A stretch of 64,000 nt of DNA from Phaeosaccion multiseriatum (Eukaryota > Protista > Ochrophyta, other classes): NCBI GenBank assembly GCA_965112735.1, contig OZ218953.1:4092001-4156000 (forward strand). The letters are read 5' to 3'. The translations under genes and the position numbers were made by a program. The notes beneath the pieces are model-generated. The model did no database searches. It worked only from the letters and a program-made list of their open reading frames with translations, and was not told the origin of the DNA. Shown here piece by piece: positions 1 through 18,089 of the stretch (positions are counted from its first letter, which is position 1; every line of letters begins with the position of its first letter).

Positions 1-781
1 AGTCCCTCAACAGTCGGACGCTTCTTCTTCCTCCTGCTCGGCCGACCCTCGCCCCGCCTCTGTCTTGCTCCGGCAGGAAGGGGTTTTCTCCGCTTGTTGT
101 CCGCCGCGACGGCCTCAAGCACCTCTTCAGGGGAGAGCAGGCAGTCGCCCACACAGCAATTCTCTAGGCACGGGTGGGTCTTGTAGGGGCGAGCATCGCG
201 CGGTGGCACCAAGCATGGATACCGGTGGCCTCCTCCGTGCCGCGAGTCTCGATGTACCGACGGGCCGTAGGTACGCGTGTTGTGGAGGTGCCCACAGGTG
301 TGGCACAGCCGGGGAACTTTGCCGTCGGCAGTTTGCGTTGGCTGCTCCCGTGCTGGTGTCGTGCCTGTCACTCGTCTCACCCCTTCCCGTGCATCGCGAG
401 CTGCGTCCACAGGGATGGCGGTCCAGGCCCTCCACTCCCGGTAGCTCTTGTTGCGGTCGTAGTGTATGCAGCCAACCTCATGCGGCCCTGTCTGCTTGTT
501 GTAACGACGGAACTGAGGGTTGATGCTGCCGTTCCATCCCCTGGTGAATTGCAGTACCCCCCAAAATCGGCACCCGCGCGGCTGGTTATTGCTGTCACAC
601 CATGACCCTCTACACTGCTCATCCCGAGCCCTTGTCGTCATCTCCACGAGAGTCTCGGTGGTGTCTGCCGCCACGCAACGCCCAGTCTTGGAGTTCCTCT
701 TGCGATGGTCGTGGTCCTTGCACACACACTTGGCCGGGATCATGGAGGGGCACTCACAGCCCTTCTCGCTGCAGGCATTGG
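1..781 (-). CDS. Cys/His-rich exon of the multidomain gene (possible WRKY/FLYWCH-like zinc finger)
   Basis: Frame is open from the CAG acceptor at 782-784 to position 1. It reads [55 protein letters not shown], then basic RRKKKR. It is absent from the ORF track because no stop lies inside the window. Confidence 0.55.
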
Positions 782-15700: not shown

Positions 15701-18089
15701 CTGTCTCTCTGTCTCTCTGTCTCTCTGTCTCTCTGTCTCTCTGTCTCTCTGTCTCTCTCTGTCTCTCTGTCTCTCTATCTCTCTGTCTCTCTGTCTCTCT
15801 GTCTGTCTGTCTCTCTCTCTGTCTCTCTGTCTCTCTGTCTCTCTCTCTCTCTGTCTCTCTGTCTGTCTGTCTGTCTCTCTCTCTGTCTCTCTGTCTCTCT
15901 CTCTCTCTCTCTCTGTGCGTGCGTCTCTCCCCCCCTCTGTGTGTGTGCGTCTCCCCCTCTCTGTCTCTCTGTCTCTCTCTGTCTCTCTCTCTCTCTCTCT
16001 CTCTCTCTGTCTCTCTGTCTCTCTGTCTCTCTGTCTCTCTGTCTCTCTGTCTCTCTCTCTCTCTCTCCCCCTCTGTCTCTCTCTGTCTCTCCCCCCTCTC
16101 TGTCTCTCTGTCTCTCTCCCCCTCTCTCTCTCTGTCTCTCTCCCTCTCTGTCTCTCTCTCTCTGTCTCTCTCTCTCTCTCTCCCTCTTTCCCTCTGCCTC
16201 CCTCTCTCTCCCTCTCTCTCTCTCTCTCCCTCTCTCTCCCTCTCTCTCCCTCCCTCTCTCCCTCCCTCTCTCCCTCCCTCTCTCTCTCTGTGTGCGTGTC
16301 TGTCTCTCTCTCTATGTGCTACTGCTGCTGTTACAAAGCCCCGCGGCTCACCTCTTTGTCGCCCCCCTTGGTCTCCTCAACACCCGGGTCTTGGGCATGG
16401 TCCTGATCCTGTTTGGGCAACGTGAGTGTTGCTTCGTGTGAGTGGGTATGTGTGTGTGTTTGTTGTGACAACGCCCCGCGGCTCACCTCCTTCTCGCCCC
16501 CCCTGGTGCCCGGGTCGTCGCATCCACCTTGCCCGGCCTCCTGGAGCGCTAAACTGGTGCTAGAGGGGGGGACCTAATGCCGTATCATGGGAGCAGGGGG
16601 GGCAGGGAGCAGCCATGTAAGCAAACAAAGAGGCAAGGTCATCCCAGCCAGCAAAAGTCGTCCCTTACCACTTGAAAACCGCGGCGGCGCACAGAGCGGC
16701 GGGGTGGACGAATACCGTACCACCAACTCGCCGGTTGCTCCCTGAGGAGCTGCTGAGCTGCTGGCTCGCCCATGGCCCGAACCCAATCGAATGCCACCTG
16801 ACAGGAGAAAAAAACAAGTCAAGCAGCAGGAGTGAGGAAGCAAGGGGCGGGCGGGCTTCCGAAAGTTTTGCTGGCCCCGTCCCATCTGTGTGTATGTGTT
16901 TGCTGTGACAACGCACGCCCCGCGGCTCACCTCCTTCTCGCCCCCCCTGGTGCCCGGGTCGTCGCATCCACCTTGCCCGGCCTCCTGGAGCGCTAAACTG
17001 GTGCTAGAGGGGGAGCCCTAATGCCGTATCATGGGAGCAGGGGGAGCAGGGAGCAGCCATGTAAGCAGCCAAACAAAGAGGCACAGTCGTCCAAGCAGAG
17101 CGAGTCGTCCCTTACCACTTGTAAAGCGGGGCGGAGTCGAGGACTGCCGATGCATGCTGGGTCGCCCATGGCCCAAACCCAATCCAATGCCACCTGACAG
17201 GAGAAAAAAACAAGTCAAGCAGGAGTGAGGAAGCAAGGGGCGGGCGGGCTTCCGAAAGTTTTGCTGGCCCCGTCCCATCTCCCCCGCTCCTCACCTCCCT
17301 AGGTCTTGTGAAGGTCTTGTCATTGGCCTCGTCGCCGTTGTCCACAGACTCAAGCCGCGCCCTCTTCGGTGGTCCTTGCTGCTCACTCGCAAGGCGAGGG
17401 ACGGTATCCAGCGAACTGGGGGCCACGAGGAGGCCGGAGAAGAAGGGAAGCGCGGGCAGCGGGGGCCAGGTCCGGAGCACGAGGATGCACTCCTCCAGCG
17501 GCTTTCCCGCTCGGCTCCGGTGAAAGAGCGCGTCCTCTGTGGGGAGCTCGTCCAAAAGCTGGGTGAACATCACCACGGGCTTTTTGAGGTGCCACTGCAA
17601 AGCTGCAAGAGCAAAGCCGCCGCGGCTGGCATCGTTGGCCGTTTGCAGCTCCGCCAGTGTGTCCCGCAACAGCTCTTCGTCACTCGCCCTCGGGCCTCCC
17701 GCGACAACCCGCACTGGAACCATTAGCTCAGGAGGCGGCGCCTGCTGCGCTGCTTTCACGGCCGCCACAACGTCCGAGCGAAGCCGGTCGGCCGCCTCGT
17801 CCATGCCGCCGTCTCCGAGTGCGATGCGAAAAATCGCCAAGCAATCGCGAGCAGGACACGTGTTGATGACGCTCATCCCCGTCATTTGCAACGCCCTCTC
17901 TTTCCAGGGTGCTGCTGCTGCTGCTGATGCGTTGGCTGAGACCGTCCGGAGCGAGGGAAGGGTGCGCGGAGTAGCTTAAGAATGTGCGCAGAAGGATTGA
18001 TCCAATGTTTGTGGAGGGAAAAATCTTTGCTTGCGAAAACGGCGCTTTCATCTTCTGTTCTCACCTCCGGAGCTTGGGGTCGCTTGCAT
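1..18089 (-). CDS. Multi-exon multidomain protein (OTU-like + class II nucleotidyltransferase + GIY-YIG-like nuclease + ARID-like + tandem repeats + Cys/His-rich C-terminus); 3' end runs off the window
   Basis: Hand-spliced exons: 18089-18065, 17974-17295, 17193-17116, 16984-16931, 16797-16669, 16540-16487, 16408-16352, 3746-1532, 1323-877, 781-<1. Every junction is GT..AG and phases match (1,0,0,0,0,0,0,1,1). No stop codon in the joined frame. The first exon and its AAG acceptor are the least certain part. Confidence 0.6.
877..1323 (-). CDS. Exon with three tandem ~45-aa repeats
   Basis: [18 protein letters not shown] / [18 protein letters not shown] / [25 protein letters not shown] acceptor at 1324-1326, GTGAG donor at 876. 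Confidence 0.65.
1532..3746 (-). CDS. Large exon encoding class II nucleotidyltransferase head domain + GIY-YIG-like nuclease + ARID-like segment
   Basis: NTase motifs: GGCVRD (~3198-3215), DIDI (~3141-3152), [14 protein letters not shown] (~2829-2852), [15 protein letters not shown]-like motifs: GCVY (~2331-2342), TYVGET..KTRWLAH (~2095-2150), DLEA. ARID-like: [19 protein letters not shown] acceptor at 3747-3749, GTGAGT donor at 1531. Confidence 0.75.
3352..3470. repeat. (GCT/CAG)n trinucleotide tract encoding poly-Ala linker
   Basis: Imperfect GCT repeats inside the large minus-strand exon. Confidence 0.9.
3808..16315. repeat. 12.5-kb complex CT/GT satellite (CTCTGTCT, CTGT, CT units) with higher-order repeats; intronic
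   Basis: Plus strand is almost only C/T/G. Landmark gtgtgtatctctgtgtgtgtcttctcgctctctctgtatgtgtgtgtcactg recurs at ~4790, 6040, 6510, 8320, 8790, 12115, 12590, 14750, 15350. Confidence 0.97.
16445..17280. repeat. Tandem duplication (~445-bp unit) carrying duplicated exon pairs
   Basis: 16445-16890 vs 16890-17280. Identical 54-nt exons ([18 protein letters not shown]), near-identical introns, and diverged [20 protein letters not shown] exons. Confidence 0.9.
17295..17974 (-). CDS. Exon encoding degenerate OTU-like (papain-fold) domain
   Basis: [52 protein letters not shown] parallels OTU GDCLFRA..LR..VV..WGG.LEL.AL...L..PI.V..I.L.Y..HY.SL. GTGAG donor at 17294. Confidence 0.5.

Follow-up and report, generated by a model that had tools for sequence, protein, structure and literature searches.

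A spliced and expressed minus-strand gene of Phaeosaccion multiseriatum with a satellite-filled intron, a probable divergent class II nucleotidyltransferase head and a GIY-YIG-like segment

The window analysed here is a stretch of 64,000 nt (64 kb) from the ochrophyte Phaeosaccion multiseriatum (GenBank assembly GCA_965112735.1, contig OZ218953.1, positions 4,092,001 to 4,156,000), and all coordinates below count from its first letter. On the minus strand of its first 18 kb lies a multi-exon gene that is easily overlooked in the list of open reading frames (ORFs). This gene is real, expressed and spliced. We read the locus as one nuclear gene whose product, an orphan protein of at least 1,146 aa, would combine a divergent class II nucleotidyltransferase (NTase) head with a probable GIY-YIG-type nuclease, and for this reading as a whole we put belief and doubt on an equal footing. 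The presence of a class II NTase beside a GIY-YIG-like module within a single exon is unusual.

Gene structure and expression

Short-read assemblies were compared with positions 1-3830 of the window. Runs X1, X3 and X8 derive from a single sample; their contigs extend unspliced across 1-3347, so that they serve as DNA controls. Run X5 belongs to another sample and another study; it is labelled 'DNA?', yet its contigs are spliced, and we therefore treat it as an RNA data set. At position 48, X5 shows a C>T change relative to the window, which points to another strain.

A 3,424-nt contig of X5 contains two joints, 1323|1592 and 781|877, at which 268 nt and 95 nt of the window are skipped. Both skipped pieces have the form CT..AC on the plus strand, that is, GT..AG on the minus strand. 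The longer of these two introns (1324-1591) had been foreseen from the sequence before any reads were compared, and the shorter one (782-876) had been foreseen as one of two options. A second X5 contig, number 17, consists of 3472-3748 and 57 further letters, and the 30 of them that were displayed are the reverse complement of 16352-16408. Hence, this contig joins exon E7 to the 57-nt exon E6, and the 12,605 nt lying between them (3747-16351, minus strand, GT..AG), which do not appear in the spliced contig, are removed from the RNA. The same contig ends 2 letters past E6, its last letters not being displayed. This end may mark a branch of the assembly graph at the E6 acceptor, since a spliced upstream exon (...GGAG) and the unspliced 78-nt intron adjoining E6 (...ACAG) have exactly AG as their common suffix.

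Joined together, exons E6-E9 (16408-16352, 3746-1592, 1323-877 and 781-1, all on the minus strand) give 3,440 nt with 1,146 stop-free codons, open at both ends. E6 contributes 19 acidic codons. E7 (2,155 nt) encodes, in this order, an acidic, Ser-rich and poly-Ala N-terminal part, the NTase-like head, a helical middle part and the GIY-YIG-like segment. It is covered by X5 contigs at 1592-3347 and 3472-3748. The poly-Ala stretch is encoded by a (GCT)38 repeat (3355-3468), at which every short-read contig is interrupted, whether of DNA or of RNA. E8 (447 nt, 877-1323), covered by an X5 contig, encodes a basic region in which PEGW and PDDW close two stretches that resemble each other. These two stretches (within 878-1321) may be a small internal repeat. 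E9 (1-781) encodes a Cys/His-rich C-terminal region, and its frame stays open to the window edge; X5 contig 15 covers 1-781 continuously with no intron, and the transcript continues for at least 376 nt past the left edge of the window. A 43-nt piece of E9 (133-175) is repeated about 180 nt further left in both DNA and RNA contigs, which fits a duplicated Cys/His-rich C-terminal unit running off the window.

The composition of the DNA agrees with this exon structure. A minus-strand frame runs without a stop from 3899 to 1242, and GC content is high at the third and low at the second codon position between about 3720 and 1620. The same periodicity is seen at 1320-850, in another frame, and at 840-420.

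The satellite and the 12,605-nt intron

The 12,605-nt intron is filled almost entirely by a satellite, (TCTCTGTC)n as read on the plus strand, which occupies 12.5 kb at 3823-16313. Tandem Repeats Finder (TRF) describes it by units of 8, 16 and 24 nt, with about 784 copies of the 16-mer. A is virtually absent from the plus strand of this region, and the AT skew is about -0.99. The 4,000-aa and 1,000-aa pseudo-ORFs that head the ORF list on both strands are products of this satellite. A sequence-only reading of the same DNA had stated that false ORFs of satellite origin mask a minus-strand gene in the ORF track, and this statement was right.

The intron has the donor AAAGAG|GTGAGC at the end of E6 and the acceptor CCCCAG|GAGGAG at 3747/3746. 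Both of its ends correspond to those of the adjoining 78-nt intron (16409-16486). Because of this match, the giant intron looks like a short intron of the 78-nt type in which an internal (CA)/(GA) tract has presumably expanded, while its unexpanded paralogue has been preserved next to it.

Genes with giant introns filled by satellites are represented by the Y-linked fertility genes of Drosophila. The intron described here resembles them in being composed almost entirely of a simple satellite and nevertheless transcribed and spliced. However, the introns of the Drosophila genes extend over megabases, whereas this one is 12.6 kb long and would derive from a short intron with a 78-nt paralogue adjoining. 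Whatever the function of the protein, the locus provides a clean, RNA-verified 12.6-kb intron made of a single satellite with a 78-nt unexpanded copy at its side, and it should be useful for studies of intron expansion and of splicing across repeats.

The nucleotidyltransferase head

The NTase-like head is encoded at 2655-3215 on the minus strand, within E7. Here, motifs of class II NTases follow one another in the canonical order: GGCVRD (3215-3198, aa 197-202), DID (within 3155-3138, aa 218-220), DCTINA (2849-2832, aa 319-324) and TDHER...LARRF (aa 369-383, with TDHER at 2699-2685 and LARRF at 2669-2655). The aa numbering is provisional and counts from the first codon of E6. For the definition of the motifs, including motif B (DxxRRD, ribose recognition) and motif D (EDxxR, the amino-acid template), we followed PMC2910056. 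As in CCA-adding enzymes and bacterial poly(A) polymerase I (PF01743), GGxVRD precedes DxD, and DxTINA stands at the position of motif B/C; at the position of motif D there is a DxxR...R..RF stretch.

We compared these motifs with shuffles of the same protein, in which GGx[VI]RD occurs with a frequency of 3.8e-3 and DxT[IV]NA with a frequency of 1e-3. A rough multiplication of shuffle frequencies, as opposed to a computed value, puts the joint chance of the ordered and properly spaced class II motifs plus DxD at about 1e-8 per protein. The ESM-Atlas search gave a best score of 0.95 for the NTase segment (184 of 256 shared features, recognition 2621), which is attained by roughly 1 in 100 shuffled proteins, and the ten best named matches were all concordant. 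Among the 100 nearest Atlas clusters, 73 contained Gad2 and 12 more contained Gad2 together with PolyA_pol. In the PHROG collection of 38,880 families, the best match was phrog_1614, annotated as 'nucleotidyltransferase' (E=0.015), and it fell on the GGxVRD..DxD stretch; phrog_11954 matched with E=0.045. Finally, when placed on an alignment of E. coli-type CCA enzymes, the segment matched 23 of the 49 invariant columns, while shuffles matched 15.4 +/- 3.0 with a maximum of 24 (z about 2.5).

Several observations weigh against placing the segment in this class. In motif A, GGxVRD and DxD are both present, and the spacing from RD to DxD is 15 aa, compared with 8 in E. coli CCA. At motif B, GAD stands in place of RRD, so that the Asp is kept and both Arg residues are gone. 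PF01743 (PolyA_pol) gave no match at E<=10. We also built a local profile from E. coli-type CCA sequences (25 usable of 26, from E. coli and IMG/VR); the segment scored -3.4 bits with it (hmmsearch --max) and was negative in hhalign, although the positive control, Gad2 against CCA, was negative too, and the test thus had too little power to count against the class. At motif D, TDHER retains the D and R of EDxxR with T in place of E, and it is followed by LARRF, resembling RxxRF. Besides the changed pocket residues and the longer loop between RD and DxD, the segment differs from CCA-adding enzymes and poly(A) polymerase I in its surroundings, since it shows no recognisable PolyA_pol_RNAbd domain or tRNA-binding body and forms part of a protein that exceeds 1,100 aa and contains unrelated modules.

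The second point of comparison is Gad2 (PF26128), a phage protein that counters Gabija and for which an NTase domain is predicted (bioRxiv 10.1101/2023.05.01.538930), together with related small phage NTases. The nearest Atlas clusters (0.95) consist of phage proteins of 190-250 aa, some members of which carry PF26128 and/or PF01743, and the Gad2 consensus likewise has hGG...DxD with a later DFT motif. Unlike Gad2, which is a stand-alone phage protein of 400 aa, the head described here belongs to a spliced eukaryotic gene, and the Atlas clusters are the sole link between the two. A Gad2 profile made from 115 homologues of the SPbetaL7 protein gave no score above shuffles, and its Gad2-versus-CCA control likewise failed; BLASTP against SPbetaL7 Gad2 aligned 14 residues of the DxD stretch and nothing else (E=1.9).

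Overall, the ordered motifs, the Atlas and PHROG matches and the CCA columns lead us to regard the segment as probably an NTase head of class II type whose nucleotide pocket is altered, a judgement made at the level of sequence, and the class II head proposed by the sequence-only reading is in this sense supported. If both this head and the nuclease module described next are real and active, minimal NTases of the phage type, from the neighbourhood of Gad2, would have very divergent counterparts in the nuclear genomes of protists.

The GIY-YIG-like segment

Downstream of the NTase head and a helical region, E7 encodes a GIY-YIG-like segment (1866-2342, minus strand), recognised by its motifs and Atlas neighbours. 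It starts with GCVYAAF (2342-2322), followed by a 58-aa insert, YVGET..R...H (2147-2094), ASELIGSN (1919-1896) and GQGNGG (1883-1866). The arrangement YVGET-x8-R-x3-H, then a hydrophobic strand, then ASELIGSN (E-LI-x2-N) resembles that of the GIY-YIG superfamily, in which YVGxT is followed by Arg and His on the next helix, a hydrophobic strand and E-x2-LI-x2-N. The pattern Y[IV]Gx[TS]x(3,12)Rx3H was found in 3e-4 of shuffles. Judged by sequence, R566, H570, E631 and N636 stand in the order expected for the Arg, His, Glu and Asn of GIY-YIG nucleases.

The top Atlas matches of the segment were unnamed fungal clusters, with scores of 0.88-0.91. Every named neighbour was GIY-YIG (PF01541), GIY_YIG_domain (PF19239) or T5orf172 (PF10544).

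Some features of the segment do not favour this assignment. The candidate GIY strand, GCVY (aa 488-491), is parted from YVG (aa 553-555) by the 58-aa insert, as opposed to about 10-11 residues in canonical members of the superfamily. The named Atlas neighbours scored only 0.84-0.86, with 81-101 shared features, and by the rule of the tool scores below 0.9 count as a lead only. No Pfam GIY-YIG match was obtained at E=10. Thus, the sequence-only reading, which had claimed a GIY-YIG nuclease here, agrees with the motifs and with the names of the Atlas neighbours, whereas the scores are low and a Pfam match is missing. We might conclude that a GIY-YIG-type nuclease fold is plausible, with the arguments for and against it in balance.

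The altered motifs of both modules raise the question of whether the protein is still an enzyme. Its domains could derive from an NTase and a GIY-YIG nuclease while the protein now works as a scaffold or a nucleic-acid binder, in which case the altered motifs and the split GIY-YIG core would be signs of decay. The changes of RRD to GAD and of EDxxR to TDHER, the 58-aa insert between the GIY and YIG strands and the extreme divergence, with no profile match, all fit such a pair of pseudo-enzymes. On the other hand, GGxVRD and both carboxylates of DxD are intact, candidates for all four GIY-YIG residues (Arg, His, Glu and Asn) are present, and the gene is expressed and has kept over 1,100 codons in an open frame. 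We regard this pseudo-enzyme reading as rather unlikely.

Homologue and structure searches

Every exon product was searched against Pfam (E<=10), PHROG, NCBIfam and PADLOC, and phrog_1614 (E=0.015) apart, these searches returned noise. The other searches of the core point in the same adverse direction as the spacing and profile results given above. Curated profiles for PolyA_pol or GIY-YIG did not match even at E=10; neither a word search of 5.8 billion clusters nor a full HMMER search of 1.84 billion representatives revealed a homologue of the core; and phmmer found no match among PDB sequences. AF2 single-sequence models of aa 156-737 (pLDDT 34) and of the GIY-YIG segment (pLDDT 38) were both unusable. 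In addition, tblastn gave nothing significant against 50,697 phage records and found no paralogues within the 64-kb window, where Rfam had no match either. At the sequence level the protein is therefore best described as a lineage-restricted orphan, and such orphans are common in protists.

This picture also invites the most sceptical interpretation, namely that the motifs resemble those of known enzymes by chance, and that a fast-evolving, largely disordered orphan protein adopts neither an NTase nor a GIY-YIG fold. Curated profile libraries and sequence databases without a significant match, AF2 models without a fold and motifs chosen by eye from very many scanned windows are all what one would expect in this case. 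Chance, however, would have to account for four class II motifs in order and with compatible spacing, for which the rough joint chance is about 1e-8, as well as for an independent language-model search that arrived at Gad2/PolyA_pol clusters at 0.95 and for the best PHROG match, which is an NTase again. We consider chance resemblance quite improbable.

Candidate upstream exons at 16.4-18.1 kb

Upstream of E6, a candidate first coding exon, recognised by reading the sequence, lies at 18065-18089 (minus strand), with an ATG at 18089-18087 and the donor GGAG|GTGAGA after 18065. Next comes an upstream coding exon at 17295-17935 (minus strand), which shows GC periodicity at 17,890-17,330. Its ATG at 17885 is in frame, and it could be spliced from a donor after 17387 or from another after 17295. 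Between this exon and E6, a 444-bp unit is repeated in tandem about 2.2 times (16409-17294, minus strand), the copies being about 90% identical to one another. Each copy contains two candidate mini-exons and introns starting with GTGAGCCGCGGGGC, the 78-nt intron at 16409-16486 among them; the mini-exons, proposed from the letters alone, lie on the minus strand at 17193-17116, 17003-16931, 16797-16669 and 16559-16487. As a side observation, the 444-bp unit (within 16340-17300) is a duplicated exon-intron-exon-intron block, and several of its introns begin with GTGAGCCGCGGGGC, which gives them an introner-like look.

The sequence-only reading had joined ten exons with GT-AG ends into one stop-free frame, which we rebuilt as 18089-18065, 17935-17387, 17193-17116, 169xx-16931, 16797-16669, 165xx-16487, 16408-16352 and exons E7, E8 and E9. 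Three of the nine introns in this chain, including the 12,605-nt one, were confirmed by RNA, and E6-E9 are free of stops. At 16.4-18.1 kb, in contrast, the fit of phases and frames is close to what chance would give. Both chains that use the first AG as acceptor carry an in-frame TAG; when nearby alternative AGs are allowed, the frame is kept without a stop in 16 of 64 splice-site combinations, and a wider enumeration of exon chains produced 1,042 stop-free paths. No coding periodicity was seen at 17,300-16,330. For these reasons, the consistency of the frame in this region is no evidence for any particular chain. The paralogous mini-exons of the 444-bp copies would, moreover, fall in different reading frames, and a direct join from 17295 to 16408 is in frame as well. 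The exon chain built from the strongest splice sites was rejected because of stops and a wrong frame. A more general caution follows for GC-rich genomes, in which matching phases and a frame without stops should be taken as weak evidence for an exon chain.

An in-frame ATG was found neither in E6 nor in the coding-like frame of E5 nor in the ensuing frame of E4. Since coding periodicity begins at the E7 acceptor and E6 looks coding, translation probably starts upstream of E6. Whether the ORF at 17.3-17.9 kb is physically fused to the remaining gene is, in our opinion, a matter of roughly even odds.

The sequence-only reading went further and proposed one continuous polypeptide, longer than 1,500 aa and starting at 18089, with an N-terminal OTU-like deubiquitinase ahead of the NTase and GIY-YIG modules and with ARID- and WRKY/FLYWCH-like DNA-binding modules behind them. 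A coding ORF does exist on the same strand at 17.3-17.9 kb, the transcript crosses the satellite to reach E6, translation probably begins further upstream, and some exon chains, as well as the direct 17295-to-16408 join, are in frame. These facts are, however, set against the behaviour of the frames described above, with stops in the first-AG chains, a quarter of arbitrary combinations free of stops, and mini-exons that lack periodicity and whose paralogues disagree in frame. The product of the 17.3-17.9 kb ORF matched no family in Pfam (E<=10), PHROG, NCBIfam or PADLOC; its Atlas neighbours were scattered over unrelated families (3 of 10 named matches agreeing, recognition 1947, below threshold); and a k-mer/HMMER search of 5.8 billion clusters found no homologues. 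Compared with the Cys motif of OTU deubiquitinases, its 'DCLAIFR' stretch has two extra residues, so that the likeness comes down to a short 'DCL..FR', and no C-terminal His motif of OTU was seen in the upstream ORF. As for DNA binding, neither 878-1321 nor 3-779 gave a Pfam or NCBIfam match to ARID or WRKY/FLYWCH; E8 yielded sub-threshold Pfam noise and no recognised domain, and E9 had no significant Pfam or NCBIfam match. Neither the OTU-like nor the DNA-binding modules were thus borne out, and we find the complete polypeptide of more than 1,500 aa decidedly unlikely.

Discussion

Our preferred reading remains that of an orphan protein in which a divergent class II NTase head is followed by a probable GIY-YIG-type nuclease. 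According to it, the pre-mRNA would lose the 12.6-kb satellite-filled intron and two short introns, and the core of the protein would be composed of acidic and poly-Ala low-complexity sequence, the NTase head, a helical region, the GIY-YIG-type nuclease with its long insert, and basic and Cys/His-rich C-terminal regions. The head would keep GGxVRD, the metal-binding DxD and DxTINA, with the ribose motif rewritten from RRD to GAD and the templating motif from EDxxR to TDHER. The mechanism that we hold most likely is that such an enzyme acts on the ends of nucleic acids: the nuclease, if active, might generate a 3' end, the NTase head might add untemplated nucleotides to its 3'-OH, and the basic and Cys/His-rich C-terminal region might provide substrate binding. 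The sequence-only reading had already imagined a polypeptide able to cut, tail and bind nucleic acid and to engage ubiquitin, a set of functions that we can treat as conjecture at most.

In its boldest form, this idea describes a eukaryotic 'cut-and-tail' enzyme in a single chain, where an active GIY-YIG nuclease is fused to an active NTase similar to Gad2 and CCA enzymes whose sugar and base pocket has been rewritten. It would be the founder of a family for which about 15 billion predicted proteins offer no detectable relative, and it might act in genome conflict or repair. We consider this scenario unlikely in its full extent. Should both catalytic modules prove real and active, their combination would be an undescribed architecture. 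In the literature that we searched, we found no account of a eukaryotic protein that links a class II NTase with a GIY-YIG nuclease, and the word 'nucleotidyltransferase' is absent from a published survey of the GIY-YIG superfamily (PMC1564403).

Genomic context

The gene resides in an ordinary chromosomal locus, with no sign of a viral or transposon island in the window, and a mobile-element origin of the core is possible. Its neighbours are a BP28CT/UTP10-like gene on the plus strand (46298-47617) and, on the minus strand (48329-58540), a dynein heavy chain gene with several exons. The presence of the latter indicates that this GC-rich protist is flagellated. Apart from the satellite, the window contains several long simple repeats, namely (GGAA)58 at 19255-19486, (TC)210 at 43120-43538 and (ACAT)63 at 62282-62532.

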